From Phallusia mammillata (lineage: Eukaryota): DNA of 64,000 nucleotides. The notes under the pieces were generated by a model. The model did no database searches. It was given only the letters and a program-made list of their open reading frames with translations, and was not told the origin of the DNA. The translations under genes and the position numbers were made by a program. Shown one piece after another: positions 1,274 through 39,880 of the stretch (its first letter is position 1; the number at the start of each line of letters is the position of its first letter). Location: NCBI GenBank assembly GCA_965637545.1, contig OZ281496.1, forward strand, positions 18,352,001 to 18,416,000, in the 5' to 3' direction.

Positions 1274-4200
1274 TTAGCAACACAATAATTGTCGGGGTTT
1301 ACGTTGTCGTTTTGAACGTCTCGGATTGCCGGGACCATATTCTAAATGTTCAGGGTCCGCGACCTTCGGTGGTGAGGATTGTGTCGTGTCAGGTATTTCC
1401 TCATTTATTCTCTCACTCACGGGGTTAGGATCATCCGCCGGATTTTCATCTTCTTCTGTTGCGTAACGAGGACGGAGTTGTTCAATATGACGTCTCCATA
1501 TAGGTCCTCGCGGAATAACACGTACTTCATGTCGCCTGATAACTTTTGCTGCCACCCAGCGTGGTTGTTGGTTGTGCCTAGGACCAAAGTAAAGGGCATA
1601 ACAAGGATCACCAACTTTGTATGAATAAACGTTTGCTCTTCGCACTAGAGACTGAGATTTGGTGGCGATCTTCGATTGGATCCCTTGTGTGGTGTGGGCT
1701 GGAGATGGAAGCAATGCATCAATCTTTGTACGCATCTGTCGGTGGTTTAAAAGCTCGCTTGGTGAATAACCACTTCCGGCCGGTGTTCGGCGGTGCTGCA
1801 TTAAAAACTCGAGCAGCGCTTCTTTAGGCGGACTTGACGACTTCCGAAGAGCCTGCTTAAAAGTTTGTACCAAGCGCTCAGCAGCGCCATTAGTGGCTGG
1901 ATGGTAAGGTGCTCCTGTAACGTGAACTATTCCTCGCTCTTTGCAATAATTCTGAAATTGTTCGGACATGAACGTGGGAGCATTATCTGTCACAAGCGTG
2001 TGAGGATAACCGAAATGAGAAAAGTCGTTCTCCAAAAGATCGATTGTAGTTTTTGCTGATATCGACTGCGTCGGATGAATACACGGGTATTTCGAATATG
2101 CGTCAATTAGCAGCAACCAGTTGTAACCCATGAAGTTAATTGCATGGTCAACATGTAACCGACTCCACGGCTTTTCTGGACTCATCCATGGATGCAGGGC
2201 AACTTTTGATGGAGCATTCTGATATACCGCACACGTATTACACTTTCGGCAGAGATCAACGATGTCCCTGTCGATGTTTGGCCAGTAGACTGCTGTACGA
2301 GCCAACTGCTTCATACGCTGCATACCGAAGTGTCCTTCGTGTAGTAGTTTAAGAACTTTTGGTCGAATACTTTCAGGAATCACCGCTCGTGAGCCGTATA
2401 ATAGACATCCGTAGCATGTGCTCAATGATTCTTTAATTTTTCGAAAACTCTCTGCTGGATCATTTATATCCTCTATGCGAAATTTCGCCGGCCATCCTTC
2501 TCGAGTATAACGCATCACCTTGGTCAATGTAGGATCTTTGGCAGTCTCTTTCTGCAAAGAATACGAATCTGATGGTTGAACTTGTAAACTCAAAGATCGA
2601 ATATTGCAAACGGTATCTACATCGTGAGCACTTTCTTTTCCGTCAAAAACTGGATCTTGACCCACAGGTAAGCGGCTTAGGACATCAGCATTTTGATGCT
2701 CTGACGTTTTGCGGTAAACTATGTCGTATGAAAATTGATTTAAGAATAATGCCCATCGAGCTAAACGATTGGCTGCAAGGGCTGGAGTAGCCTTGTTTGG
2801 CCCAAACAGCAACAGCAAAGGCTTGTGATCGGTCACAAGGATAAACTTCCTCCCAAACAAGTATTGATAGAACTTCTTTAGAGCGTAAACAATTGCTAAA
2901 GCTTCTTTTTGTATTTGACTGTAATTTCGTTGACTGTTGGTCAATGTCTTCGATGCATTGGCTATCGGCCGCTCGCTACCATCTGGATAACGGTGAAACA
3001 ATACAGCTCCGATACCAACGTTAGAGGCGTCACACGCAATTCCAACAGGCAACGTCTGGTCAAAATGCGTGAGCACGTTGTTGGATGACAACATACGTTT
3101 TAGTTGCTCAAATGCGTCTTGTTCTGTTTCTTGCCACTTCCACTCGACACCTTTTCTTGTAAGTCGGTGTAACGGTTCTGACACTGTTGAAAAATTCGGT
3201 GGCATGAACTTGCCGTAAAACTGCACAGAACTAAGAAACGAACGAAGTGTTGAGACGTTGTGCGGCGGAGGCATTTTAATGACGTCATCGACTTTTGTAC
3301 CTTTTTCTACTCCGTCCTTTGATAATATGTGGCCCAAATACTCCACCTTGTTTTGGGCAAATTTGCATTTTTCCATGCGACAACGAAGACCCTTCTTGTC
3401 TAATCTTTCAAAAAGACGTCGCAGATTTTTGAGATGATCATCGGCAGAAGAACCACTCACGAGGATATCATCTAAATATACAGCAACTCCTGGTAAATCA
3501 CAGGTAAGGTCATCCATGATTTTCTGAAAATAACTTGGAGCAGAAGATATACCAAACGGCAAAACGTTTTGCAGCAATACACCACGGTGCGTGCTAAGTG
3601 CCAACCTCTTTCTGCTTTCGGGGCCTAGCATGATTTGATTATACGCATCCGCAAGATCTATCTTTGTAAAACCATGTCCACCCCCAAGTCTTCGTATTAA
3701 TTCGTCTGGTAGAGGTAATGGATGACGATGCGTTTTAAGTTGAGGATTAACGGTAACGGAATAATCTCCACAAACTCTCAAATTAGCTTTGCATGTTCCA
3801 GGTAAAACTGCTTTTCGGACTGGTACAACTGGAGTTCCCCAGGAATTAAATTGAACTGGCGTCCAGATGCCCCTCGATATGCCAGCGTCGTAGGCCTGGT
3901 TGAGATCCTCTTGCAAAGCTATTGGGACGGCTCTAGGCTTGCAGAATATAGACTTTGTCTCGGGTTGAAAATTTATTTCAAGCTCGTAGCCTTTCAAACA
4001 ACCAAGTTCAGATTTAAACAAGTTTGGAAAACTTTCGCAAAGTTTTCGGCACTCTTGTGCGAGATTTTGTTCCTCAATTTTGTCGATAATGTTGACCGGA
4101 TTTTCTTTGTGAAGAATGTCGTCTAAAGAAATATGCATCTTCTTGATGGCGTCACGACCTAATAGATTCAGCTTAGGGATGCTTGAAACAAGTAACGTAA

Positions 4201-4489
4201 TGTTACAATCCTTGTTTGACCCAGCATGTCTCGCCATAGCTGTAAAAGAACCTAGGATTGGCATGGGATGATCTGTAGCAGATTGATATCGCGTATCTGG
4301 GTCTCGAAGCTTCGGCTTTCCAAGACTTTTCCAGGCCGCAATGGACAGAAAATTTCCACCTGCAGCGGTGTCGAGTTCCATGATGCAAGTTTTCTTGTTG
4401 ATAGAAATTGGAACCTCCAATTTTGGAACTTTAGCTACTTGGTTTGAAATATTTTTCACAGTAAACTTGTCGACACATTTTACTTTCAT
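1274..4489 (-). CDS. pol: Gypsy Pol polyprotein (protease, RT, RNase H, integrase), open for 1071 aa
   Basis: Protease LDTAA; RT KIDLADAYNQ, LPFGI and YLDDIL; RNase H CDASNVGIGAVL, TDHKPL and NADVLSR; integrase HX3GH..CX2C, HVDH, LVTDN and NGAAERLVQTFK. Confidence 0.96.
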   Translation of the reverse strand: MKVKCVDKFTVKNISNQVAKVPKLEVPISINKKTCIMELDTAAGGNFLSIAAWKSLGKPKLRDPDTRYQSATDHPMPILGSFTAMARHAGSNKDCNITLLVSSIPKLNLLGRDAIKKMHISLDDILHKENPVNIIDKIEEQNLAQECRKLCESFPNLFKSELGCLKGYELEINFQPETKSIFCKPRAVPIALQEDLNQAYDAGISRGIWTPVQFNSWGTPVVPVRKAVLPGTCKANLRVCGDYSVTVNPQLKTHRHPLPLPDELIRRLGGGHGFTKIDLADAYNQIMLGPESRKRLALSTHRGVLLQNVLPFGISSAPSYFQKIMDDLTCDLPGVAVYLDDILVSGSSADDHLKNLRRLFERLDKKGLRCRMEKCKFAQNKVEYLGHILSKDGVEKGTKVDDVIKMPPPHNVSTLRSFLSSVQFYGKFMPPNFSTVSEPLHRLTRKGVEWKWQETEQDAFEQLKRMLSSNNVLTHFDQTLPVGIACDASNVGIGAVLFHRYPDGSERPIANASKTLTNSQRNYSQIQKEALAIVYALKKFYQYLFGRKFILVTDHKPLLLLFGPNKATPALAANRLARWALFLNQFSYDIVYRKTSEHQNADVLSRLPVGQDPVFDGKESAHDVDTVCNIRSLSLQVQPSDSYSLQKETAKDPTLTKVMRYTREGWPAKFRIEDINDPAESFRKIKESLSTCYGCLLYGSRAVIPESIRPKVLKLLHEGHFGMQRMKQLARTAVYWPNIDRDIVDLCRKCNTCAVYQNAPSKVALHPWMSPEKPWSRLHVDHAINFMGYNWLLLIDAYSKYPCIHPTQSISAKTTIDLLENDFSHFGYPHTLVTDNAPTFMSEQFQNYCKERGIVHVTGAPYHPATNGAAERLVQTFKQALRKSSSPPKEALLEFLMQHRRTPAGSGYSPSELLNHRQMRTKIDALLPSPAHTTQGIQSKIATKSQSLVRRANVYSYKVGDPCYALYFGPRHNQQPRWVAAKVIRRHEVRVIPRGPIWRRHIEQLRPRYATEEDENPADDPNPVSERINEEIPDTTQSSPPKVADPEHLEYGPGNPRRSKRQRKPRQLLCC

Positions 4490-5418
4490 TGATTCGTGAT
4501 ACGCTTTCTTTCTGCAGACCGACTGTAAATGCCCACGTCGTTTGTTGAAGCCTTAAAACGACATTCACTTGCAAAATGGCCCTTCTTGCCACAACGATAA
4601 CAATTATATGAGCTTGAATTCTCGTTCTGGAGCTCTGCAGAAGGAACCTCCCGGTGTCGCTGATTCCTTGGACGAAACTTGCGCACCTTGTTTACCTCAC
4701 TTTGTTGCGTCCCGTAAACGGTTTCTTTAGCAACTCTAGCGGCGTCCTCGGTCTCCATGGCGACTTGAACTGCCCATGCGAAAGTCAACTCGTCACTTTT
4801 AATTTTAAATACGGCCTTTAGAACTGCTTCATTTTTTACGGAACAAATAAAGCGTGTACGAAGTGCCTCATCTAACGGATCCTTGATGGATGGAAAATCA
4901 CAGGTGCTGGCGTCTTGACGGATTCGTGCTGCCAGTTCCTGGATTGCTTCTCCTGGTTTGCGCTTCATCTCACTCCAGTAGCGAAATCGTTCCCGCACAA
5001 CAAAAAGTTTGGGATCAAACTGGTCTTTCATGAAACCTACGATTTCTTCCATCGTCAAATCGTTGACTTGCTTCGGCGGCGAACTTTGACCTGCTAAATT
5101 GGCCAACAACTTATATACCGTACTAGTCTGGTTGGTCAAAAACACTTGTGCTTTGCGGTCATCGGACACAGCATCTGCCTTGAAAAACGTGCGAAATCTC
5201 GACCAATAATCTTCCCACAATTCCATGGTTTGATCAAACGCTGGAAAATTGGGCGTGGCTGTGCTGGAACTGGGCGTGGCGGAACTTTCAGATGTCGACG
5301 ACTGCTTCAAGAAGTTCATCAAAGTTTCCATTTGGTCTTGATGTCGGCGTTCTTGCTCTTGGTGTCGGCGTTCTTGCAGTTCCATCTGTTTTTGCATGGC
5401 TTCTAAAAATTTCTCCAT
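4486..5418 (-). CDS. gag: Gypsy Gag, 310 aa
   Basis: Capsid-like region followed by zinc knuckle CYRCGKKGHFASEC; lies directly downstream of the PBS. Confidence 0.93.
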   Translation of the reverse strand: MEKFLEAMQKQMELQERRHQEQERRHQDQMETLMNFLKQSSTSESSATPSSSTATPNFPAFDQTMELWEDYWSRFRTFFKADAVSDDRKAQVFLTNQTSTVYKLLANLAGQSSPPKQVNDLTMEEIVGFMKDQFDPKLFVVRERFRYWSEMKRKPGEAIQELAARIRQDASTCDFPSIKDPLDEALRTRFICSVKNEAVLKAVFKIKSDELTFAWAVQVAMETEDAARVAKETVYGTQQSEVNKVRKFRPRNQRHREVPSAELQNENSSSYNCYRCGKKGHFASECRFKASTNDVGIYSRSAERKRITNQ

Positions 5419-5465
5419 TGTTAGAGATTTTCAAGGACCAGACTGCGTTTACCTCGTTTAGCTGG

Positions 5466-5483
5466 ATCCCATCCTCGTCGCCA
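5466..5483 (-). other. Primer-binding site complementary to the 3' end of tRNA-Ser(GCU)
   Basis: The plus strand reads ATCCCATCCTCGTCGCCA, matching the 3' end of metazoan tRNA-Ser(GCU) plus CCA as I recall it; 2 nt from the 5' LTR. Confidence 0.85.
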
Positions 5484-5485
5484 AT

Positions 5486-5754
5486 TGTTGTATTCTTCAA
5501 GTTGTTGTATTTACGACACCAAGTAAACGGAAATAAAATAGAATGATTAAACTCAACATGCGCAGCATTATATAGGCAACGATTATCCATTTACATTCCA
5601 CGGAAAACACGCCAGATTAGGAATAGTGTGCTTGCGGACCATACTTGAAATGTGAGGAATGCTGCACTGCGCTAAAGGCATACAAGGATCGAAATGAGGT
5701 GCTAATTAAAACACAACTTTCGAAATTACAACGCAACAATAGAAATCCTTAACA
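5486..5754 (-). repeat. 5' LTR of Gypsy element
   Basis: 269-bp direct repeat of 977-1245 with 4 substitutions. Confidence 0.97.
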
Positions 5755-8700
5755 GACACCAACTCATGATTTTTGTCACACCGTCCGAACCATCGCAAGG
5801 TCCTCGAAACCTTCTGGCTGACCAACATAAGCTTAAACAAGTGAAACATTGTGTTACATTTTAACATAAAAAAATCAAAACCAAAACGAGTAGAAATCGT
5901 GGAATATAGCCTATTGGTTTATTTTTTGTCAAACATTTCTTTTATTATGTCATTTATTTATTTTTAACTTTTGAACACGTAAGCGGAACACGTGCATTGT
6001 GCCATCACAGAAAGTTTGGGAATCAATGATTTATCGCATGATTGTGTCTCCATGCTGCAATGTTTAACAACATTCTAAAGAAATAATTTTCGATTAATTA
6101 TGTGTGTTCTATAATTGTCTGCCTTTAATCAACCATAAGCGATTTGAAATATATCCTTAAAGCCGAAACTATGATAGTAACATTATAGCAAATATAAAAA
6201 TGATATATTTACCTTAAATATATGAATGTAAAATTCAGATAAACGTATGAATTGTTTGCTAAAAATTTCTTACTTTTTTACGTTTCCGTGTCAGTTAATT
6301 GATCTTTTTTTCTTTTTTTGAATTTTTTTGAAAAACTATCATGTGTAAGTGAAAAGTGAGATATTGCGTACAGACATTTCAAATTTCATTATGTCTGCAA
6401 GCTGTGACGTTACAAACGACATTAAACGAATTACATTTCAATGAATTTGTGTGCTATAATCGACTGTGGTTTAATAAGCCATAAACGATCAAAACGGTCA
6501 TTTTGGTTTAAAAATGTGTAACTTCTCAAATAAAATTTGCTTACTCATCGTAGGGTTGTAGTCTTCCATAAACCACTGATATTATGCGAATAATTCTTCC
6601 TTTTTGACAACTGATGTCGAAGTTTAAAGGGTAACAAACTAAACCAAATGTATAACCGGGTTAGTCTTTGAAACCGCCTTGTCAATTTTGAGCAATTTCA
6701 AATCAATTTTAAGTTAAACACTTGGCGTTACCTACACATCGTATGTGTTCTGTTTCTTGTTGACATTGGTTTTCATAATAAACGGAGTGAGCTAAAAAAA
6801 CAAACGTCAATTTTTGTTCCGATAAAGTTATAATATGCTTCACGTTGACATTTTCCACAAACAAATAAATTGGGTTAAGATATTTTTTTTAAACAAACAG
6901 ACCTTTCTCTGCAAACAGTTTATGGCTCAAACAAAATTAGTAACGGTATCAGATATAAACCATGTTGCTTACCTTGGAACGATAAAAACACCAAAACTGC
7001 AGCACACATCTGTACGAATAAACAGTGTGAGCGATTCATATCTGTTCAAATCTTACAGTATCTATAAGTGTAACAAGTTTTCCTGTAATGCAGTAAAGCA
7101 CAAAATTCTACACCGAACAACAGAGCAACAATTGCTGCACTGGGTGCGTGCATTCCCACAGTACAAATGTTTTTAAAATTTAAACACAAAAGATCGTTGC
7201 CCTTTATTCGCTCTCCACACTAAAACATACGTACGGTGCATGTGAAGGTAACCACAGAAGTATCAGGAAGTTGATTGTTGGCATGTTGTGGTACACAAGA
7301 GGTGATCACCGAGTCGGTGCAGCTTGTGGCTATAACGTTCACCTCTTCTGCAATTTCAACTATTATTGATTTGTTAATTGCAAGTAGGATTTATAAAGCG
7401 TTTATGCTTTGAATTACTTTGAATAAACGTTTTTTCGATTAAGTTTAATGAAAGTCAAAACATTGATCAGAATTGCAAAAAAATCAGATGAATCACGAAA
7501 ATACCTTTAGTTTTGAACAGCGATTGTTATGGGGACCACGACTACATGTCCTTACTAGTGACTATCCTTACTACCCATCAATACACAATAACAACATACA
7601 CGTGCAAACATCAATATCCTCAAGTTCAAGTTATTGTGAAAAAAAACTGAACGATCCATTGTTTTTCTCAACGACGGCATAAAACTGAAACTGCGAGAAT
7701 TTTTATAAATTAAACTGAGATTAAACAAGCAAACTTGGGCTGTTATGAAACAAATTTTGCCATTTTTGGTTATTTGAAAATTTATCAACATTTTTTTTAC
7801 ACCATTTCAAATAATCAAATAATTTTTGGTATGCTGTATACCTCAATGTACGTGCAAAACTAATGTAAGTTAGTTAAACATATTGGTGATATTTTTATGA
7901 AATGGAGATCAAACAGAAGCATGCGTTTCCAGCATTAAATACACATTTCCCAAATAATATTGGCAAAAAAGCATGGTAATTTACTGTACATTTCAGTATC
8001 AATTTCACCCAGTAACAATTAAGATTATTCAAGTAAATTAAAGTGTTAAAGACCATAGTTTAATTAACCAAGTGCTTAATAGAATGCTGTTGAAAGAAGT
8101 GAATAATACACTTGGAAACACACTTGTTTTCTTACAGAGAATAACTGAAACATGATTCTACTTTTTTCACATTTTAAACAGAAAACATTTTTAGCACGGA
8201 TTTGATGACTAACAGCACAACCACATTACAGTATTTGTTCAATGACTTATCCTTATTTAACAATGTCTTTAGGCCTTACATTCCATGAATTTAAATTTAT
8301 ATTGGATTATTTGATTTGAAGCAAAAATCATTTAATTTAAGAAATTTGAAAACCTTCATTTGATAACAGCCCTGGACACCACAATAACAATAAGTAATCA
8401 TGTACTAAGTTTATTCTCATTAAAATTTGTACACATACATGTACATTTTCCAAACCAATATCTCCGAGTAAAACATTACGGCGTGTTTGCATTTGCAACT
8501 GTCTTGTTTAGTTAAATCAAACAAGCAGACTTAACACCCTCTTTTAGTTTCTTAACGTTTATTACTGTAGGATTCGTAAAATCTATAGGATTCCAATTTT
8601 ATTTAATATAACTTACCGTCCTTTGTAAACGCTAGACCTTGATGCTTCGATCAATAGGATCTCCTCTTCCCCATTTCATGTGACAGAAAAGGTGCCTCGA

Positions 8701-22415: not shown

Positions 22416-25400
22416 GTTGTAAATTTTAAAGCTTCAAGGAGTTTTGCACTTAAAAAAGCAATTATAAGCTATTTGCCAGCAAATAAAGCAGCAATTATAG
22501 CAGTTAAAAATCTGAAAGACAAATAATAGTCTGTACACAAAAATTCCAAAAAAAGATGTTAAAATAAACAAGTTCTGACACAAATGTAAAGTGGTTGTTA
22601 AATTTGTCAGTTATGGTACCAATAAACAGCTGTATGGCTAGTTTTTTTGTGACAATTATAATCTGTGAAGGTCATATAATATGTTGAAAACGCTGACTGT
22701 GGCCATAAGGTAACTTAAATGAAATATGACCATTTTTTTGAATGTTGTCGAACTGAAATACTTCGACCTTTTTTGAATCATTACTTTTTTTTCTATATTC
22801 TTGTTGTGTTTTACCGTATTTACAACCGCTTAGTTTCGAGTCTGTGTCACGTGTGTTATTGTTCCACATTATTACTGCATGTTATAGTGTTTAGGCTAAA
22901 CAGTTTAGCCGTCGCTGTGCAAGTAAACAAAATACACAAATGATGCCGTCTGCTATTTACACTCGTGTACATTATTGCGTAACAAAAATTACGTCACAAT
23001 GGAGTTTCTAATTAAGATTTGTATTACTTGTTTTTCTACACAAAACAATGGCTAGAAAACTATAAATGTAGGTTTTCTATATATTGCCAACTTATATATG
23101 TTCAATAAAGGCTAAAATTTTGAGCAGCACCCCCACAAATTTTAGGCACGAGCCGCCACTGTAAAACAGTAAGAATGTTGTGTACTTATTCCTGCCAAGA
23201 TTTTATCATGTCTTGCTTGGAATACTTGAAACATATTTGGCTGAAAAGATGATTACCTCGCTATCATCTTCAATATCTCTAGCTGATGAAGAATCGTCCT
23301 CTGTACAGATTTTTGTTGACATAAGAATATAGCAATATTCTTGCGAAAAAAACGTTAACCACTCCTTTCCTATTTATCAATTTAGCTTACATTATGTTAT
23401 CGTTGTGCTGTATGTATCGTACTAGCCTATAATAATCCAAACAATACAGCAGTCTAACGCATACAAGACGCTACATTTTCCGATTACTTCCAAAGAACCT
23501 TATTGAAACGAGTTGAAGTTAAAGTGGTCAACGATATACCTAAAAGACTAAATAAGCAATCAATTGTGCAGAAGGACAAAGTGATCAGAAATATACACAA
23601 AGGCAAAAATAAGCGATCACTTATGCCACCGAATGGTCTACAATAAGTGAAACGGGGCGCAAGCACAAAAATACTGGTTCGAAAAGTAGTCCACATGCAA
23701 AGAATTGGTTTTTGATAAAATAAAATTGCTGTAAATTGAGCAATTATTTGGTGTCCATTATTTTGTGTTAATTTCGCCACTGGTTTAATAGGTAGGGTTG
23801 CCATCGATCTGGAAACAGAAAGGTAACATATCGCGAATTTCCTCACCAAATATTTTACGAAAGATGTTTAGGGGAAATACTGACAGTTTTGCAAAAAAGT
23901 GCATGCCAAGTAAAATGTTTGACAATTTCCAGTGTTGCCAGACAAAATTTTCACTCGTCATTTTATGCGACATTGCGCTCAAGAACCTTTCTACAAAATA
24001 GCTAAAAGTGGGTCATTTATTTAAATTTCTGTTGTTAAACGAAATTCAGGAAATTTATTTTAGTTTTTTACTGATACGTTTAAATTTTAACGAATTTGGT
24101 CTCAATATACCCGAGAATCAAAAAAGTTTGGTTGTTGGGTACAAATTACAGGATCTTGACTAATTTTAGGGGCAGATTAAGTCTCTTGACTTTCTGTCGT
24201 CCCTTTTAACATTGTCCGACCCTCTGCGATAGCCTTTGCTTTGCACGTAGAGATATGAACCTAAGGCATTGTTGTGAAATCACATGAGAAGTCTCACAAA
24301 ACACAACATTTTGCAACACCTCATATTTAACGATGAAGTTTGTTTTACAGTTATAACTATGGCAAAAAGCAGCAGCCCACTTTTGATATTTGCTGCAAAA
24401 TTTTCAAGCCCACCTATCAACACTGAATTTAAATGCAACCAATCAGGAAAATTGTTGCCGTTAAAAAATCAATTTTATGTTTTTTTATTATTAAATTGAT
24501 TTTTTGCTCGACAAATTTTGCCAAAAACTGAATAGCATACACTTGCAGAATCAAAACGACTGTGATTTCTCGCGATTATACAATTTATTATTTGCGAAGC
24601 AAAACGATAAAACATCGGTAAAGCGCACCTTTGTCATATTATAGCGATACAATGTTATACAATGTGCTTAGATACAACGTTATGCTGATAATGGTTGTTT
24701 CCGTTGAAGACAGGTGTCTAAACAAATTCCAAAGATGTTCTTCTGGACAAATATAATGTAAATATTTAACGTTGTTGTTGCAATTTTTACAAACCTTATT
24801 CAGCCACAAAATGCCATGTGACCAATTAACCCTAAGTTTTTGAACTTATAATGGAGCAGTTTAAAGATTAGTCGGTCACTGGAGCCACTGGGCAAGACGA
24901 CGGAATGACGTAACCAGCTTGACCAAAAATTTCAACTCGGTCAATCGTCATAGTAATGACATCATCAATAGGACAAATGCATCTGCTGTATATGTCGTTG
25001 ATTTCACGGGAAGTCAGAACTCGTGGCCACATCATATAGTTGCTAATTGTTCCACTGAAAAAATAAAAATTGTTTCGCATGAAACGAAACCATTAATATT
25101 GCTTTTCTTTGAAATTATTCGATTAAACAAACTATGCTGAAAAAAAAATCTGACATAATTTGACTTCGAAATAAATGAAATAAGTGATGAATATTGTATT
25201 GTTTCAGTTGGATTACTGAGAAAGGAAACACGTTTTTAATAATGGCAATCCGATGTGTTTTGGAGTATAATTTTGCACCAATTGGAGCCAGGTGGTCCGC
25301 AAAATCAAAATGGAATTTTACGTGGCCATAAAATGAGTATACACCATGATCTACCTACTTAATACCTGAATGACTGAGAAGGACTCAGTCCGCCAGCATT

Positions 25401-26406
25401 TATCGCGTCTTGATCCTGGGCCAAAATTAAACTTCCGCCTCCAGTGGTTGGAAGAAAATTGCCATATATGTTGCCAGTTTGAAATCCATCCACGTACGCC
25501 ACTGCGGTTAGTTTATCGAACGTGACGCACAAGTGAGCCTGGAAAATGTACCACATAACAAACTGAGATGATTATTAAATATAAAATCTGGCCGTTGAAA
25601 GTTCCCTATTCTGTAACTATTTTCGTCGTTAAACCCGACAAAAGACCCAGATTTTTGTGTCCTAGCGCGCTATATGACTTGTAAGTTGTTTTAGGCCCCT
25701 TTTTAGACGATTATGGTCTGATAGCATTACAGAACACTTACCCGGGTATTAGCTGACAATGTCACAGGGATGTTGTATACTGCCATATTAATATGAAGTT
25801 GTAGGTTGGTGGGGGAAGTAAGGAAAATAAGAAAATCATTTTATGCAGCACTTGTAGCATAGCTGGCCACAGAAACATGGTGAGAAAAATCTGTGACGTT
25901 TACCCAGAAACAAGCGGTGGCTGCTTTGAGGCTACATTGTAAATGCTAAAGGTGGATTCGTGTTGGGTGGATTTTTTTCCACCCTTTTACATGGGTTCAA
26001 TCTTGTACATGTACCTTTAAGGGCATATTTCACTCTTTTTGCCTTCACATAAAAGGTGGAATATGGGTTTTCCCCCCGTTGTACCAGTTTCGTGGTCAAC
26101 AATGTTTCTTACCGAGCGTAGTCCGTTTAAATTACATTTTGTGCAAAAACCACCTGGTTTATTTTTTGGTTACTGTTTTTTATTCAGTAGTTTTTTCAAG
26201 GTGTTGGAAAAACTGCCACCACCCCAGTGGTCAATTACTGCGCATGCGCGTTTATTTAGTCCACGTTGTTGCGAAAAACACGCGTTTGAGTTTGTCGCTT
26301 GTGTTTATCTGTGCTAATCGTGTAATGCTGTAAAGTTGAGCTGTAAGCAGTTTTATCATAAGTTTCTTGAAGGCAAAACAGTTTGCATAGTGTTTAAATT
26401 GTCTTT

Positions 26407-28755
26407 ATGGAAACGTTTAAATGCCCAGTGCAGCTATGCAGTGTTACTGCTGAAGATTTCAAAAGTTTTCTGAACCATTTACGATACTTTCACAACGACA
26501 ATGAATTAAAAAATGTGAACTGCACTTTGTCTGACTGCTCCAAAACGTGCAGCTCGTACAACTCTCTAAGGATGCATATTTACAGATACCATAAAAGTGT
26601 AACAGAGGTAAGAAGAAATAACAGGATTATTGAAATAAATGATCAACCCACTGAAAACGATTTTCTAGAGCCGATACAAGGTACTTTAAACTCAACACAA
26701 TTTGAAATGAAGTTTGGCCTAATGTATTTAAAGCTCCGTGAAAAGTATGTTTTGCCTGTGTCTGTGTCCAAACAAATTATGAATGACATTGTCGGCCTTT
26801 TTTCTGACTGTCGAATACCTAATGGAGAAGCATGTTCAAATGAAACAGTTTCAGATCATAACTTATTGCTTCCTAAAACTCTGTGGAATCAACTACAAAG
26901 TGAATTTACATTCAAACGTTTTTGTATTTCGCTTGGTTATGTTCAGCCTCAGCAAATACAACTGAATCCCACAACTCAGTTTCATTATGTACCTGTAACA
27001 AAAACACTAGAGAACTACTTGTCACATTGTGATGTTGCTGACAGCATTGGAAGAAACATACAAAATAACAATCTTATTTGTAACTATATTGATGGCAGTG
27101 TATTTTTGACAAACAAATTTTTCCAAGGCAAACAGGAGGTTCTTCGCCTGCACTTATATGTTGATGATTTGGAGGTATGTAATCCACTTGGCACCTCGCG
27201 TGGCATACACAAACTGACTTGCTTCTATTTTACAGTGGGCAATATTGAACAAAAATACTTATCTACCCTAAGCAACATACATCTTCTTGCTGTTGTTTCT
27301 TCTTCTATTGTTAAAAAATTTGGATATGATGTTGTTCTTAAACCGTTTTGCACTGAAATGAAAACATTGGAAGAGAGTGGTCTTGAAGTAAGTGTTAAAG
27401 ATGGAAGAAACTTACACCTTGTCTGTGGAGTTGCTACTATATCTGGTGACAATCTTGGTATACATGACATTGCTGGTTTTCGCAGATGTTTTTCGAGTGG
27501 CCGCATATGTAGATATTGCATGTGCTCTTATGCAGACTTATCTATTAAGATCCATGAAAATATGTTTACATTAAGAAGTCCACAATCACATAAGGAACAT
27601 GTAAACAGTGTACTTAAAGATGCATCACTGATTCCGGTGTATGGTGTTAGATGTGCACCGGCACTTTCATCACTTTCCTCTTTTGAACCATTGCTGGGCT
27701 TACCTCCAGACATAATGCATGATGTTTTGGAGGGGGTTATGCCACTAACGATAAACCTGGTGATCAGTGAGTTTCATGCTTGTAACTTTATGTCAAAATC
27801 CTTGCTTATCGATAAAGTAATGTCATTCGCATTTGGAAAAAATGACAGACGAAACAAACCTGTTTCATGGATTAATGGAAATTCAATGTCATTAAATGCA
27901 CATGAATCTTGGTGCTTATTCACTCTTTTGCCATTCATTATTAATGAAGATATTCCTGTGAGTTGCAAAGTATGGGAACTATACATACTTTTGTGTAAAA
28001 TCTGTGAAATTATTTTTGCTCCAAGAATAATGCCAGTTTGGATAGACATTTTGGATGTGTTGATTCATGATTTTTATAAACTGTTGTGTGAAATAAGCCC
28101 ATCAAAGGTTAAACCGAAAGTTCACTACATGCTTCACTATCCAAGGTTAATTTTGCAATATGGACCATTGCGACACATGTGGTCGATGAGATTTGAATCA
28201 TTTCATCAAAGAATAAAAAAAGTAGTCCGACAATCTTGCAATTTTAAAAATTTAACACTGACCATTGCACAGCGTATTCAAGGTCTAAAGTGCTGGGAGC
28301 ATCACAATATTTGTTGTTTACAAGATGAAAATATGATGTATGGAAAAACACTTAATTGTCATAAGTTGGACATTACTATGTTACCTACTGCATTAGTTAC
28401 TGTTGCTTCTTCCATTTTTGGAGATGTAACAGATGTGTTTTCTTATGGTGGCATGGATTTGTATTTTGATTGCTGCCACTACAAAATTAGTGACATTTTT
28501 GTGATTGATGTTGTTGATGAGGATCCTGTTTTTTTTAAAGTGAAAATTATTTGGTCATTCAAACAGGCTTGGTTTTTAGTAGGCAACATTTATGACCTTG
28601 TAAAATTTAACAAACAGCTTCATGCATATTGTGTTCAGTTATTATGCAATTTTTGGCATGTGATAAAAGTTGGCAGTGAGCTTGCTGGTCCCTTTGATGC
28701 TTATACTTTTAAGAAAAACAGTTACATCAAATTAAAGTACCTGCCTTGTTTGTAG
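26407..28755 (+). CDS. EnSpm-type DDE transposase with two N-terminal C2H2 fingers, 782 aa, uninterrupted
   Basis: Fingers CPVQLC..HLRYFH and CTLSDC..HIYRYH; core motifs LYVDDLEVCNPLG, SGDNLGIHDIAGF..CRYC, PPDIMHDVLEGV, KPKVHYMLHYP..GPL..W.MRFESFH. Likely triad D (YVDD), D (GDN), E (RFES). Confidence 0.9.
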   Translation: METFKCPVQLCSVTAEDFKSFLNHLRYFHNDNELKNVNCTLSDCSKTCSSYNSLRMHIYRYHKSVTEVRRNNRIIEINDQPTENDFLEPIQGTLNSTQFEMKFGLMYLKLREKYVLPVSVSKQIMNDIVGLFSDCRIPNGEACSNETVSDHNLLLPKTLWNQLQSEFTFKRFCISLGYVQPQQIQLNPTTQFHYVPVTKTLENYLSHCDVADSIGRNIQNNNLICNYIDGSVFLTNKFFQGKQEVLRLHLYVDDLEVCNPLGTSRGIHKLTCFYFTVGNIEQKYLSTLSNIHLLAVVSSSIVKKFGYDVVLKPFCTEMKTLEESGLEVSVKDGRNLHLVCGVATISGDNLGIHDIAGFRRCFSSGRICRYCMCSYADLSIKIHENMFTLRSPQSHKEHVNSVLKDASLIPVYGVRCAPALSSLSSFEPLLGLPPDIMHDVLEGVMPLTINLVISEFHACNFMSKSLLIDKVMSFAFGKNDRRNKPVSWINGNSMSLNAHESWCLFTLLPFIINEDIPVSCKVWELYILLCKICEIIFAPRIMPVWIDILDVLIHDFYKLLCEISPSKVKPKVHYMLHYPRLILQYGPLRHMWSMRFESFHQRIKKVVRQSCNFKNLTLTIAQRIQGLKCWEHHNICCLQDENMMYGKTLNCHKLDITMLPTALVTVASSIFGDVTDVFSYGGMDLYFDCCHYKISDIFVIDVVDEDPVFFKVKIIWSFKQAWFLVGNIYDLVKFNKQLHAYCVQLLCNFWHVIKVGSELAGPFDAYTFKKNSYIKLKYLPCL

Positions 28756-28790
28756 GTTTACCATATTGTGTTTTTCAGATATTCAGCAAA

Positions 28791-31419
28791 ATGTCACATA
28801 CATTTCATGTGACACATAACCAAACAAAGCAACTTGTCACTGTAAAATGTCTAAATGGCCTTTATGAGGAGATTGCCAATGTGTTTGGTATAAGTGATTT
28901 TAAACTTCAGTCTTATGTCGAACAGTTTAGTGACTGGGTTGATTTCGACACGCTTCAAGAAGCTCCTACCACAGGCAAACTTAAAGTAATAATTAAAGAT
29001 GTGGAACAGTTTGAACATATGGAACAGGAGAATAGCTTCTCTTCAACCATATCAGAATCAGACACAGTTGAGTTAAACGAGGAGTTGCCTTCTACCTCAT
29101 CAAGTGAAGACACCAGAAGTTGGCCGATGATATATAAAGTTCCGAAGCTCCCGCCACACATTTTTTCAGAAATCAGAAGTGTTGAGGAGGGAGTCACAGC
29201 ACACATTGGGGGAAAACTTAGGAGAAGGATTGTGGCCATAATTTTTGCAGACATGATCAAGTACACTTTGTAAGTATAAGTTTAATGCTGTATTTTTTGT
29301 TGAGTTTAAACAAATATCATTGACAGATATCCAATGCCTAATCAATATAGAGAAGTTTGTCAATCCCTAATTGCTGAATACCCGATACTGAGGGATCGAT
29401 TCTCAAACACTGGCTGTTACTTTGTATGTAAAATTTAATGTTTTTACTTTCTGAAATATTTTTTTCTGGAAAAGGATTTGTGCAAAGCTGTTTTACATTT
29501 ACTGTATTTGCAGACAACATGGCTAAAAATGTTGAGAACTAAGTATAAAGATTGGCGCAGACAGCTAACCAATAACAGTTATCGAGAGGTTATGAAGCAA
29601 AAGTACGGCCATGTGAAGAGCAGCAAATGTGTCAGTGGAAATGAGGACTGTAGCAAAAAAAGAAAAACTAATGTAAATATTTGATTTGTAAGAGTAGTGT
29701 GGATAGCTGAAATATGACCTCTAAATTGCAGGAAAATATGACACAGCCTGACGATTTTGGCACAAAGATGCTTATAGATCAGCTTCAAAAAGAGATGAGC
29801 AAGCGAGAACCTTGCGAGGATACAATTAGGGACAGACTAAAAAGAACTTATGAGTTTCGTCGTAATTTCGGAGGTTCAGCTAAAGATCTACTTGAGGTTT
29901 ACCACCCTTTAAAATCATCAAAATGGGTGCGCATATTTAGTTCTTGGTACAAACTTTAATCAGTGATATTGGCTTTGTATAAACAACAGTGGTGATTTAA
30001 AATACTTTTTATTCTAGATTTTAGAGGAGATGGAACAGGTATCAGGGATTAACATGAAAAAGTTGCATGCAGATGAGTTTAAAAAAATTAAAGCAAAAAT
30101 TAAGTGGGAAGGAACACAAGTCAATGATGCTATTTTAGGTTAGTTTAAAAATGCATGTAGTATGTGTCACATGTTAGCAAAAGAACATAGGTTTAGTCAG
30201 ACTTGGACAACTAGATAATTCTAGTTGTCTAGTTGGGCAAATTAGAGCAAAATGGCGGTAATTCTAATTCTAATCTAATTTAGAATTATCGAGTAAGCTC
30301 TAATTCTAATTCTAATCTAATTCACAGTTTTCCCAAAATCGCTACTTTGTCCAACGGCACTTTTAGTCATGTGATCTGAGCATGCATTTTGTAACCAAAG
30401 CGCACAAAACCATGCAATTAACAAGACCAAACTACATCACTGAAACACGTTTTTTAGTGAAATTTGGCACTCAGCTCTGTTTAAACACGTTTCAAATGCA
30501 CCGAATCGTATTGTCTAAAATGTACAAATCTACAAGTTCAAATGTGAAACGAACTAAAGTTGGTTGGCTTAAATCTAATTCTAGTTTGAATTCTAGTTTA
30601 ATTTCTAGATTTTGAGAAAATTCTAATTCTAATCTAGTTTGCAAAAAAGGAGATGCTCTAATTTTAATTCTAATCTAATTTGAAAAACCGAAAAAAAATC
30701 TAGTTGTCCAAGTCTGGGTTTAGTGCAGTGGTCTTCAACCTTTTCCACAGGCGACCCCAATTTAAAAGAAAATTAAATTAGCTGGACAACTTGTGTTTTA
30801 TATAGATTATTGCATCACTATGATTAGATTGTGACACAAGGTACCAAGCTGTACTTTAGCAAAGGTTGCGAACTAGAAAAAGTCCATTATTTTTTGGTGA
30901 TAATTTAACGCCAGTAAATTAAATTTATAGCGACCCCACTTGGGGTCGCGACCCACAGGTTAAAGACCACTGGTTTAGTGGGTATTATGTCAGAAAATAA
31001 ATATTTAGCATCATTTTTTTATGTATAGAAATGAAGAATTCATGGATCTTGTTTTTACCAGCAGTTTTCAAAGAGAAAATGAGCAGTTTTTTTGTTTTTG
31101 ATGAGGTAAGGTATTGTAAATTGACATGGTCACTTAAATCTGCAACCTGAAAAAAATATGTTTTTAGAATGTCCATTGGCCATATCCACTTGTTACTGTA
31201 TCAGCTTCATCAACTCTTGTCCACATTGATGGAACAGAAATAATTGTTGAGGGTGACCTTATTACAGCATTTGCAACTTTGATTGCAGCATATTGGGTAT
31301 TTGATGTTGTCATACCTCCTCAATGCTGTAAAACCATGGCATTTGTGTGTGGCTATATTCTAAATTTAACTGGAGTAAAAATACCTTTACCTGTACTGCG
31401 CATTATTAACTCATTGTAA
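28791..31419 (+). CDS. EnSpm second (accessory) ORF, 7 exons, SAMD3-like family with ubiquitin/PB1-like N-terminus
   Basis: Exons from 28791-29269, 29327-29423 and 29514 onward to the stop at 31417-31419 splice in frame with no internal stop. Motifs WPMIYKVP, YPMPNQYREVCQSLIAEYP, WLKMLRTKYKDWRR and AFATLIAAYWVFDV. Confidence 0.75.
30198..30716. mobile_element. hAT-type MITE in intron of EnSpm ORF2, 519 bp
   Basis: Perfect 19-bp TIR CAGACTTGGACAACTAGAT; TSD GGTTTAGT at 30190-30197 and 30717-30724; (TCTAAT)n subterminal repeats. Confidence 0.93.
30726..30972. mobile_element. hAT (Buster-type) MITE, 247 bp
   Basis: TIR CAGTGGTCTT(C/T)AACC; TSD GTTTAGTG at 30718-30725 and 30973-30980. Confidence 0.92.
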
Positions 31420-33199
31420 TGCTGCAAAGACTTTGATTTTGTCTGCCATCAAAATGTGTGTATTTTTCTTTGCTGAAAAAGTTTTGTAACTTAATAACTG
31501 GGTTTACAGTGCTACATTTGAATTGTTGAAGTATCCACGGTGCATTATTTTAACTGGCTTATTAAGGTAATACAATATGTGTTCGTTAATAATTTGAAGT
31601 GTTGTTTTAGGGTGAGAACATTGTATTGACAATGGTGGAATTAGGGTTTTCCTCCCAAAAGATATGGCATGTTAGGGTGGAAAGGTGTAGATACACCCAG
31701 ATTACGAGGCCGTTTTTATTACATAAGGGTGGAATTTTCGCAATTCCACCTAGGAAAATCCAGTATAAAATTGGGTGAAAATGTATAAAAACACCCGTTA
31801 GGAAAGATCAGTTTGTTTCTACCCTTGGGATATTAAGAAAACTTTCCACCTTATGGTGGAAATTTTGAACCACCTGTATGGGTGGTCGTTTACACCTTTA
31901 CGATTTACAGTGTAGGTACGTAACGACGATACCAGACGAAGTCCTGGTTTTGAAGTTTCCTTGGAAAGCTGTATGTCACTGCGGGGCAAGCTGAAATGTT
32001 CAAATTCTGTATTTCACATCAAATACATGTGGTTGCACGGTGGAAGTGCTTTCGTCTTTTCATTAGTAAATTATTAATGGTTTGGACATATCATTTTTTA
32101 CCAAATTATTGACAACAACAAACCTCTGGTTTTTGTATTTGTCAGGCCTTCAACCTTGACTTTCAAGTCATCAACCTCCATTTGCAACTTTGGCGAAGCC
32201 GAACCTAAAATCAAGTAAATCAACATTATTTAGGTGGATTGTAAAATATGCGTGGCAATAAAATGTATTCTTATACTTCCAGGGGGTCCAACGGGTCCAG
32301 GGGGACCTTGTTCTCCTTGTTTGCCTCGTAAACCTATCAGTTAAAAATAGATTGTTTAAGAAGTCAAACTTATGCGTTAATTGACAATCACTTACCTTCA
32401 AGATATGGCTCTTGACCCGGCAAAATCGCTACCGGAGCACACAACTGTAGTTTGTTGCATTGATCCTGAGAACGAACAACATCGACCAACAGAACAGCAA
32501 AAACAATGCGAAGAAATTCCATCATGAGTTGAATAGAAAGTCAAGCTAAAAGTACATTTGATGATAACATAAAACTTAGCAAATCTTCAAAAAGCAACAA
32601 TTGTTACCTTGTAGGTTGACGTTTGTAGAAAGTATGTATCACCGTTTCATTTTCCATGCTTATATGTAGGCTCCACGTAATTTTTTTAGCACATGTTGCA
32701 GTAAGTGGAATAATCCTTTAGCCTTTACCTTCAAAGTAAACTTGATACGCGACTGCAGATGAAAACGTGTAATTACAACAAGAAGCTTTGCAAAGTTTGT
32801 GGTATATTAAATTTTGGGACATCATAAAGCAGAAAACGTTTAAAACGAGTCACGTTTGATGTCAAGCATTTGGCCTGGGGGTATTTTCAGTCTTAACTCA
32901 ACAGAATCGACATGTACATCGGTCTTGCACAACTGAAAACACCAGTTTATTTTCTAAATCATTTATTTATTTTTCTATAATATAACTCGCTTCCCAGGGA
33001 CGGTAATAATGCTGCATAAATAAAAATTTAAAAAAGGTTTTTACCAAAACTTCACTTCAACTGTCTTGTTGAAGACGGATTTTTAGGGTAAACTTTATTT
33101 GTTAAAAATCAATGATTTAACACAAGGGGTTAACCAACAAAACACAACGTTTGTAAAACAAATGCTGTAGCATACCGTAACTATATTTTTTTCAAAAGT

Positions 33200-39140: not shown

Positions 39141-39880
39141 CTATCGTTTAAGTTGATTTTTGTTTTTGTCTTCTTCATCCGCACGAGCATTGTGTCTCAC
39201 AGCTAAACTCGAAAAGCGATTCATAGATTCTTGTAGAGAAGCCAACTTCACCACCATCCATTTTTTTGCCCTGGAAAGTTGATCTTCTAATGCTTTTGAG
39301 TAAAGCAAAGGATTAAGGGCGCTGTTGATTGGAAGCAACAGACAAACGCTCAATACATAAGCATCAGGTGGCATCTTGATTCCTCCAATGCTCAAATATC
39401 CCATGACACAAATTGGAATCCAGCAAAAGAAGTCGGTCAAAATCAACCTCAAGATTCGTTTCTGCATCTTGGAACTAACATCATTGCTTCTGGATCCTTT
39501 CATACGGTTGCTCTGCTTGAAGATCAGAATATATGCAATCACCATATGGATGAACATAACAAAATTGATTGTAATGCGAAAAGCTAAAAATTCCCAAGCA
39601 AATTCACTGGTTGTGGAAAACAAACGCGGCATACAGACCCTTGTTTCTCCATAATATCCAAACTCCCCTTTGATTGGGTTACGAGAAAACGTTTCCTTAA
39701 TAGTTTTTTTCACATCGTTCCAACTTTTTGGTTTCATACCGTTAACCTTTTCTGCAAAAAGTGACATGTTTTTACTGGAAACAAAGTCATTTCCAAAAAT
39801 GTTGTTTGGAAACCAAACATCAGTTGAAAAATCCTTGGGGCTAAAGGGGAGCATTAAAATAAAGAAAAAAAACTTGTAAG
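39141..39880 (-). pseudogene. Class A GPCR fragment (end of TM4 to TM7 and C-tail), RXFP/LGR/GRL101-like
   Basis: ECL2 FGYYGETRVCMP; TM5 TINFVMFIHMVIAYILIF; TM6 LILTDFFCWIPIC; TM7 LLPINSALNPLLYS. No intact TM1-TM3 found upstream. Confidence 0.8.

Follow-up and report, generated by a model that had tools for sequence, protein, structure and literature searches.

In vertebrates, complement activation by pentraxins is indirect and goes through C1q, a collagen-stalked molecule that binds them; collectins and ficolins have a stalk of their own and dock MASPs directly. Collectins (MBL, SP-A and SP-D), ficolins and C1q are laid out as signal peptide, short Cys-bearing N-terminus, collagen-like run, alpha-helical neck and globular head, the stalks of such defence collagens comprising roughly 11–60 triplets, and in collectins GPP-type triplets directly before the neck are the arrangement that nucleates the triple helix. 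In the known long pentraxins (NPTX1, NPTX2 and PTX3) a Cys-bearing coiled-coil N-terminal region precedes the C-terminal pentraxin domain and drives covalent oligomerisation, whereas the short pentraxins (CRP, SAP and the Limulus pentraxins) lack an N-terminal extension and form rings via the head alone. Among ascidians, which are the sister group of the vertebrates, a 'Ptx-like' family and its induction by LPS were reportedly described in Ciona robusta (Vizzini et al. 2021, Fish Shellfish Immunol 111:94, PMID 33513439).

The locus described here lies on the minus strand (32525–24868) of a 64-kb window of Phallusia mammillata DNA, the window being the whole stretch that was analysed (64,000 nucleotides). 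Six GT-AG exons, with every intron in phase 1, give 298 codons in total. The encoded protein opens with a signal peptide and a two-Cys segment; six to seven Gly-X-Y triplets follow, then a neck of two heptads, and the chain closes with a complete pentraxin domain. A first-pass annotation had proposed six in-phase exons with signal, Cys, collagen, neck and pentraxin parts, and every one of these elements is present over that span. The features are:

32396..32525, minus strand: exon 1; start codon, signal peptide, Cys23 and Cys29; donor GTAAGT, phase 1
32277..32333, minus strand: exon 2; collagen-like GLR GKQ GEQ GPP GPV GPP; 57 bp, phase 1-1
32124..32204, minus strand: exon 3; neck of about two heptads, L-x3-V-x2-L-x3-V-x2-L (L/V spacing 4-3-4-3)
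31913..31990, minus strand: first part of exon 4 (4a); start of the pentraxin domain, A-C-P ... Y-R-R-Y-V-P; ends at the TA target site
25933..31912, plus strand: DNA transposon, 5,980 bp counting one TA; splits exon 4, with TA target-site duplication
30198..30716, strand unspecified: small nested element inside the transposon, with perfect 19-bp inverted ends
26407..28755, plus strand: transposon ORF, intact, 782 aa
25742..25932, minus strand: second part of exon 4 (4b); pentraxin strands, first Cys of the pair (A-C-F-W), S-Y-A-T motif
25841..25843, minus strand: in-frame TAA stop in exon 4b, at the position aligned with CRP Asp60
25366..25538, minus strand: exon 5; H-L-C-V-T (second Cys of the pair), GGGSL, Q-D-Q-D calcium-site motif, Q-S-F
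24868..25054, minus strand: exon 6; end of the pentraxin domain, family-specific C-I-C-P, C-terminal Cys, stop codon

The hydrophobic core of the signal peptide occupies residues 4–12, and the two-Cys segment, also in exon 1, carries a conserved Q-x-C-A-P motif and aligns with the N-termini of the Ciona proteins P0009 and P0010. A seventh Gly opens a GSS triplet spanning the exon 2 junction, and exon 4a is homologous to the start of exon 4 in Ciona and Clavelina. About 90 residues stand before the pentraxin domain, the N-terminal region being ~65 residues long after signal cleavage.

As the first-pass annotation had recognised, this copy is broken, both by the 5,980-bp transposon in exon 4 and by the TAA stop at 25843–25841. 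The terminal inverted repeats at the transposon termini (CAYTGTAAATSSTAAAGGTG) match at 17 of 20 positions; they were found by direct alignment of the transposon ends, a default-seed repeat scan having missed them because of the mismatches. The 782-aa product is likely a Plavaka/CACTA-type transposase, an assignment that serves as a lead only: language-model features give 0.95 to Plavaka clusters, and Pfam shows only a weak zinc finger.

An uninterrupted form nevertheless exists in the species, since contigs from other individuals carry CAA (Gln) at 25843–25841, where the window has TAA, and pass directly from exon 4b into exon 4a sequence with no transposon between. The A>G change at 25843 makes up all of the depth in runs X1 and X4. 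One X1 contig equals the window over 25749–25934 save for this change (TAA to CAA), and beyond 25934, where the uninterrupted form was read from the contigs' loose ends, the X1 contigs continue into exon-4a-type sequence whose 30-letter consensus has three differences from the window, none of which changes an amino acid. The earlier pointer to intact alleles or paralogs was well placed: an uninterrupted form of the locus, or a near-identical paralog, is present in other individuals, and the source of these contigs could be a very recent paralog instead of an allele of the window locus. A tblastn search with the joined protein found no second copy of the gene in the 64-kb window. Read depth in exon bins is 5–17x that in intron bins, and a single run can have as many as 8 variant contigs over the exons, from which we deduce many paralogs at 90% identity or above.

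The best explanation as a whole, to which we give a probability of roughly 60%, is that the window locus is a null allele of one gene in an ascidian-wide, multi-copy family: secreted long pentraxins with an N-terminal oligomerisation region constructed in the manner of a collectin stalk. The window copy itself would be of lesser weight: as a null allele, it documents that a transposon insertion and a nonsense variant segregate in a multi-copy, polymorphic family of recognition genes.

Chance is excluded as the cause of the layout, since two further ascidian genera have their segments in this order, with introns at identical positions. The proteins concerned are F6Z4Q2 and a 310-aa 'serum amyloid P-component-like' protein of Ciona intestinalis, and a 310-aa protein of Clavelina lepadiformis. 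The collectin-like layout was rightly taken to be that of one gene: it is conserved in Ciona, where the gene has six exons as in the window, including a homologous separate collagen exon, and in Clavelina, where a single exon spans everything from the signal peptide through the Cys residues and collagen run to the beginning of the neck. Identity of the window protein to these relatives is 37–39% over the full length, and the joined protein can be aligned over its entire length with P0009 and P0010 (Ciona) and P0012 (Clavelina), at E-values of 1e-56 to 1e-59. All three have Cys-rich N-termini, a helical neck and 6–8 GXY triplets by regex count, together with a Pentaxin domain of 67–81 bits (Pfam cut-off 25). 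An exhaustive phmmer search that took the 57 aa of exon 5 as query returned eight proteins, P0006 among them and all at most 59% identical. In the tunicate-like ENA contig L002, a homologous pentraxin exon is preceded, ~700 bp upstream, by two Cys and 14 triplets, and contig L001 has pentraxin exons 4–6 with no GXY run found within 6 kb upstream, its stalk being either absent or further away. None of 20 non-ascidian pentraxins from a length- and word-limited search has a GXY run of at least four triplets, from which a wider absence outside ascidians does not follow.

The first-pass annotation had left it in doubt whether the architecture was already catalogued. The family does stand in public proteomes, under the names 'neuronal pentraxin-2', 'serum amyloid P-component-like' and 'neuronal pentraxin-1-like', and in Pfam the collagen run falls short, at 13–19 bits, of the Collagen cut-off of 27.2. 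Domain-architecture databases are therefore unlikely to list the combination, and we point out this blind spot, in which a stalk too short for the threshold makes such proteins appear as plain pentraxins. The layout is filed as that of an ordinary pentraxin and we found no paper describing it, the searchable literature containing no mention that we could find of a collagen–pentraxin fusion, or of pentraxin, Ciona and collagen-like together.

The protein shares with collectins, ficolins and C1q the whole order of segments from signal peptide to globular head, but its head is a pentraxin jelly roll and not a C-type lectin, fibrinogen-like or gC1q domain, and its stalk has only 6–7 triplets. Collectin identity was considered and rejected, the protein being only laid out like a collectin. 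To our knowledge, six triplets is far below any collectin, ficolin or C1q chain, and a stable triple helix is not assured at this length. It is possible, if in our view doubtful, that these are ordinary long pentraxins in which the Gly-X-Y run is a flexible spacer, and in which the coiled coil and disulfides oligomerise the protein as in PTX3 and the neuronal pentraxins, with no trimer required and no link to MASPs or complement. The shortness of the stalk (5–8 triplets, with the sub-threshold Collagen scores), the nearness of the head to NPTX1/2, and the MASP motif, incomplete in the window and absent in L002, would all fit a spacer, as would the assembly of PTX3 via N-terminal coiled coils, to go by the titles of structure entries 8s50 and 7zl1. 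A mere spacer does not, however, readily account for Gly being kept at every third position in all five sequences compared, despite 37–39% overall identity, nor for a run lengthened to 14 triplets in L002 against 6–7 uninterrupted ones in the window; moreover, the GPP-type triplets adjoin the neck, as where collectin triple helices nucleate. We thus favor a stalk of collectin-like construction over a spacer.

If so, the intact mature chain of ~275 residues (after signal cleavage) would assemble via the two-heptad coiled-coil neck, which would nucleate a very short triple helix of 6–7 triplets ending in GPP-GPV-GPP. The two N-terminal cysteines could lock trimers covalently, and may also join trimers into larger bundles. 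The clustered pentraxin heads would then bind microbial or damaged-self ligands in a putatively calcium-dependent manner, making the intact protein a putative humoral pattern-recognition molecule, either an agglutinin or an opsonin, a role in keeping with the LPS induction published for Ciona 'Ptx-like' genes. More speculatively, MASP-type proteases may dock on the stalk at its conserved G-K-x-G: an early triplet of the window protein has Lys as its X residue, in the place where MBL and ficolins have their MASP-binding Lys. Both trimer formation and MASP docking are steps that we infer. By the motif as defined in PMC2856262 and PMC2592599, the window stalk (R-G-K-Q-G-E) keeps the Lys and neither of the Pro positions nor the aliphatic Xaa, Clavelina is nearly complete (P-G-K-Q-G-P, exact save that Xaa is Gln and not aliphatic), as is Ciona (R-G-K-A-G-P), and the 14-triplet stalk of L002 contains no such motif. 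MASPs are widely described in ascidians (PMC5465252). That complement-activating defence collagens include, in ascidians, a fourth class besides collectins, ficolins and C1q, with a calcium-dependent pentraxin head and a minimal collagen stalk docking MASP-type proteases, is on this evidence a rather improbable extension of the main reading. If true, one molecule would do what vertebrates split between pentraxins for recognition and C1q as collagen-stalked activator. A pentraxin head on its own collagen-like stalk, conserved across ascidians, lets both the direct wiring of pentraxin recognition to MASP-type proteases and an exon-shuffling origin of head and stalk be tested, all junctions being in phase 1.

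The window exon pieces match Pfam Pentaxin (PF00354) weakly but collinearly (profile positions 24–49, 87–144 and 146–171; E 0.13–0.15, the pieces being short), and we therefore rely on collinearity and on the full-length homologs. Against solved pentraxins, the family profile scores 109 bits for NPTX2 (E 2e-30), 98 for NPTX1 and 70 for CRP, with short pentraxins at 66–73. An AF2 monomer model of P0010 has a head with pLDDT of ~90, a helix at neck residues 88–103 and disorder over residues 22–70, and its best Foldseek matches are NPTX2, SAP and NPTX1 (TM 0.82–0.84). The head thus has a pentraxin fold and is nearest to the neuronal (long) pentraxins (TM 0.82–0.83), which makes a long pentraxin with a mini-collagen in its N-terminal oligomerisation region the closest known kind. 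Consistent with this, an unrelated N-terminal extension, two Cys and a heptad neck precede the C-terminal pentraxin domain. Unlike the vertebrate proteins, which have a coiled coil of 150–200 residues, the window protein has ~65 residues with Gly-X-Y and two heptads, and its head bears four extra cysteines (at the domain start, in the C-I-C-P pair and at the C-terminus).

The earlier framing around CRP holds for single residues, and less well for overall affinity. The intradomain disulfide pair (CRP Cys36–Cys97) is kept, A-C-F-W and H-L-C-V-T aligning with CRP-like and neuronal pentraxins, and fold, Q-D/E-Q-D and the Asn61 and Gln150 equivalents are likewise shared with short pentraxins, as had been claimed for the Cys pair, QDQD and Q150; the head is nonetheless nearer NPTX2 than CRP. 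Of the calcium-site residues of CRP, which we take to be D60, N61, E138, Q139, D140, E147 and Q150, the window has equivalents of N61, E138 (as Asp), Q139, D140 and Q150. The D60-aligned position is the stop codon in the window, Gln in other individuals and A/D/T in relatives, and that of E147 is S in the window and Q/E/N in relatives. The classical pentraxin signature is H-x-C-x-[ST]-W-x-[ST]; in the window it reads H-L-C-V-T-F-D-K, where Phe replaces Trp and Lys replaces Ser/Thr, in Ciona H-L-C-V-W-F-S-T and in Clavelina H-F-C-A-F-Y-S-Q. The family is a divergent pentraxin branch, whose membership rests on profile and fold and not on the signature motif. Since solved pentraxin domains vary in oligomer size (pentamers, heptamers, tetramers, hexamers and octamers, by the titles of structure entries), an assembly other than a pentamer is possible.

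The same structure matches, with NPTX2 and NPTX1 the best, and the NCBI name of neuronal pentraxin-like given to relatives could suggest an ascidian counterpart of the neuronal pentraxins, acting at synapses or in the extracellular matrix and not in immunity. We regard this as very unlikely, as the N-terminal region does not resemble the long coiled coil of those proteins, and a multi-copy, highly polymorphic family with a segregating null allele is more typical of immune recognition genes. In addition, an LPS-induction study already exists for Ciona robusta: its 'Ptx-like' genes are given as LPS-induced in hemocytes, specifically pharynx granulocytes, in PMC9960688, which cites Vizzini et al. 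2021. These genes are probably the same family as the Ciona pentraxin-domain proteins P0006, P0009, P0010 and P0033; the window protein comes from another ascidian lineage and is 37–39% identical to the Ciona proteins.

That the collagen and pentraxin exons belong to two neighbouring genes is scarcely credible, even though none of the sequencing runs listed is an RNA run with sequence of the Phallusia locus and L001 has no nearby collagen run, as all junctions are compatible in phase 1 with no stop or alternative start between the parts, the same order and intron positions appear in Ciona gene models of both NCBI and UniProt origin, and the single Clavelina exon joins signal peptide, Cys, collagen run and neck start. 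As a separate observation, FACIT collagens with TSPN/LamG heads came up as language-model look-alikes of Clavelina P0012 (0.91–0.92); few features are shared, and we consider this a 'jelly roll plus collagen' likeness, not homology.

We find that the locus at 32525-24868 on the minus strand is a null allele of a member of an ascidian family of long pentraxins with a collagen stalk, with the caveat that the intact copies seen in other individuals may belong to a recent paralog. The animal DNA of the window is rich in AT (GC content about 0.36). Joined, the six rebuilt exons give 298 codons, and all introns start with GT, end with AG and are in phase 1. The first-pass annotation had described six in-phase exons encoding a signal peptide, two cysteines, Gly-X-Y triplets, a neck and a pentraxin domain, and every item proved accurate on rebuilding.

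Exons of the collagen-pentraxin gene
32525-32396, minus strand: exon 1, signal peptide with hydrophobic core and a segment bearing Cys23 and Cys29
32333-32277, minus strand: exon 2, 57 bp, collagen-like throughout (GLR GKQ GEQ GPP GPV GPP)
32204-32124, minus strand: exon 3, neck with 4-3-4-3 spacing of Leu/Val, about two heptads
31990-31913 and 25932-25742, minus strand: exon 4, pentraxin domain
25538-25366, minus strand: exon 5, pentraxin domain
25054-24868, minus strand: exon 6, pentraxin domain

No second pentraxin copy was found within the 64-kb window by tblastn with the joined protein.

That the collagen and pentraxin exons might belong to different genes, which the first-pass annotation had named as fatal to its proposal, is contradicted by the homologs. 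A phmmer search with exon 5 against 1.84 billion representatives retrieved a Ciona pentraxin-domain protein of 240 aa (P0006), and word searches that started from P0006 and went on to a family alignment led to P0009 (UniProt F6Z4Q2, 334 aa), P0010 (310 aa) and P0033 of Ciona intestinalis and to P0012 (310 aa) of Clavelina lepadiformis. In P0009, P0010 and P0012 alike, a signal peptide is followed by an N-terminal segment with cysteines and the Q-x-C-A-P motif of the window protein, then by 6-8 Gly-X-Y triplets, a neck that is helical and the pentraxin domain. Their alignment with the window protein starts in the N-terminal Cys region and reaches the C-terminus, at 37-39% identity (E 1e-56 to 1e-59). 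Mapped to its locus, P0010 is encoded by the same six exons (signal and Cys, collagen, neck, three pentraxin), and its introns coincide with those of the window gene in the alignment. The Clavelina gene has signal, Cys, collagen and the start of the neck all in its first exon; the boundaries of its three pentraxin exons match those of the window gene. This conservation of order and introns shows that the architecture belongs to a single gene, which is old within ascidians and under constraint.

The glycine periodicity of the stalk has been kept while the X and Y residues diverged. Members of the family evidently differ a good deal in stalk length: an ENA contig (ERZ25067582, here L002) holds an ORF with two Cys and then 14 triplets, against 6-8 elsewhere, and a homologous pentraxin exon follows about 700 bp downstream (5149-5340, 6010-6384). 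Exons 5-6 of this family member were not found within 6 kb downstream. In P0009, the neck segment E-E-L-E-x-L-R-N-E-I-R-Q occurs twice in tandem (residues ~85-135), giving a longer coiled coil than that of P0010; the repeat may reflect a duplicated exon or an error of annotation.

On Pfam Pentaxin (cut-off 25) the intact relatives reach 67-81 bits, and against solved domains the family profile matched neuronal pentraxin 2 best (109 bits, E 2e-30), followed by neuronal pentraxin 1 (98 bits), a Limulus SAP-like pentraxin (73 bits), PTX3 (72 bits), CRP (70 bits) and SAP (66 bits). The AlphaFold2 monomer of P0010 is a confident jelly roll (pLDDT ~90), with a helix at 88-103 corresponding to the neck and with residues 22-70 disordered, as expected of a lone collagen chain; its best Foldseek matches were NPTX2, SAP and NPTX1 (TM 0.82-0.84). 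Alignments bear out the canonical Cys pair, Q-D-Q-D and the Gln150 equivalent claimed earlier and add the Asn61 equivalent of the calcium site; positions matching CRP D60 and E147 vary across the family. The classical pentraxin signature is H-x-C-x-[ST]-W-x-[ST], from which the window protein departs by an F in place of W. Four extra cysteines are found in the head of the family.

The collectin architecture proposed at first stands as a layout. The order of parts is like that of collectins, but their head differs, and because the head here is a pentraxin domain the protein is not a collectin. The relatives are publicly annotated as 'neuronal pentraxin-2', 'serum amyloid P-component-like' and 'neuronal pentraxin-1-like'. 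As the collagen run scores 13-19 bits on Pfam Collagen (cut-off 27.2), the domain-architecture search proposed at first is most likely to come up empty. A search restricted by length and words retrieved 20 non-ascidian pentraxins, none of which carried a Gly-X-Y run, and neither a tunicate pentraxin with a collagen-like stalk nor any collagen-pentraxin phrase was found in a searchable literature of 8.4 million papers (without the paper dedicated to the Ciona family). The family is real, conserved and already catalogued, yet apparently undescribed. The original observation as a whole is confirmed by the gene model and the conserved homologs, and its interpretation is supported in part.

The copy in the window is, as first reported, broken, and it carries two lesions. 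Exon 4 is interrupted by a 5,980-bp insert (25933-31912) flanked by a duplicated TA, and once the insert and one TA are taken out its reading frame is unbroken. The other lesion, at 25843-25841, is a TAA directly ahead of the conserved N-D/E-x-L-I motif. The insert ends in 20-bp inverted repeats (CAYTGTAAATSSTAAAGGTG; 17 of 20 positions match with the ends aligned) and holds an intact plus-strand ORF of 782 aa, with more ORF pieces on the same strand at 28746-31420. The closest look-alikes of this ORF are Plavaka/Transposase_21 (CACTA-type) transposases, a lead from language-model features only, and Pfam gave only a weak zinc finger. The insert is a seemingly autonomous DNA transposon. Nested within it is a 519-bp element (30198-30716) whose 19-bp ends are perfect inverted repeats (CAGACTTGGACAACTAGAT) and whose interior contains aattctaattctaatctaat repeats; it looks like a MITE.

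Neither break is fixed in Phallusia mammillata. We aligned Logan contigs from four DNA runs of other individuals (X1, X3, X4 and X5, from three studies) to 24700-26500. A 210-nt contig of X1 equals 25749-25934 except for A>G at 25843, which turns the TAA into CAA (Gln); X4 likewise has G. The X1 contig runs on for 24 letters past 25934, where the consensus of loose ends reads as the first part of exon 4 (31990-31913), so X1 holds an uninterrupted exon 4; contigs of X3, X4 and X5 also pass from 25934 into sequence of this type. Over a 30-letter continuation, X1 and X4 carry three differences from the window, none of which changes an amino acid, and X3 is identical. The transposon interior (26266-26500) has about single-copy depth in the four individuals, and in X1 its end adjoins unrelated sequence, which places the element elsewhere in that individual; it may therefore be mobile.

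Depth over exon bins is 5-17 times that over intron bins, and as many as eight variant contigs occur, which points to many paralogs of at least 90% identity in the genome. An intact allele and a very recent intact paralog are therefore not fully separable, and under either reading the intact alleles or paralogs expected by the first-pass annotation do occur. Contigs of X3 and X4, and of X1 and X5 by the joint alone, depart from the window at 25777 or jump over 25779-25849. Such contigs, in the most variable stretch of exon 4 (25777-25850), indicate strongly divergent alleles or paralogs.

The predicted product is a secreted chain that shows the order of parts of a defence collagen, with a pentraxin head carrying calcium-site residues. 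We suggest that the coiled-coil neck would nucleate a minimal triple helix, that the N-terminal cysteines could fix trimers and bundle them, and that clustering of heads would give avidity for repetitive ligands, through which the protein might act as an opsonin or agglutinin. Structure entry titles list solved pentraxin domains as pentamers, heptamers, tetramers, hexamers and octamers, so a pentamer is not imposed by the head. Indirect support for an immune role comes from a pentraxin (Ptx-like) induced by LPS in Ciona robusta granulocytes, as PMC9960688 reports in citing Vizzini et al. (2021), and from a multi-copy, polymorphic family with a segregating null allele.

MASPs are present in ascidians (PMC5465252). 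Near the stalk start, the residues at one aligned position are P-G-K-Q-G-P in Clavelina, R-G-K-A-G-P in both Ciona proteins and R-G-K-Q-G-E in the window protein. The stalk Lys is common to the three genera; the full MASP-binding motif is absent from the window copy, and no MASP-type motif occurs in the 14-triplet stalk of L002. MASP docking is possible but unlikely, and the stronger reading of a pentraxin-headed complement activator is likewise improbable.

At the Ciona locus (L004), a 407-aa trypsin-domain gene (1689-5533, minus strand) lies on the opposite strand, 2.5 kb upstream of the collagen-pentraxin gene. The window itself is repeat-rich.

Other features of the window
1274-5418, minus strand: Ty3/gypsy-type gag-pol remains (RVT_1, RNase H, integrase, zinc knuckle)
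39141-39854, minus strand: rhodopsin-type receptor fragment, a 237-aa ORF that matches rhodopsin-family receptors over their C-terminal half (7tm_1, 33.9 bits)
55590-58698, plus strand: Pao/BEL-type retroelement remains with a peptidase ORF (Pao-type peptidase at 58153-58698)

The receptor fragment may represent a GPCR exon.
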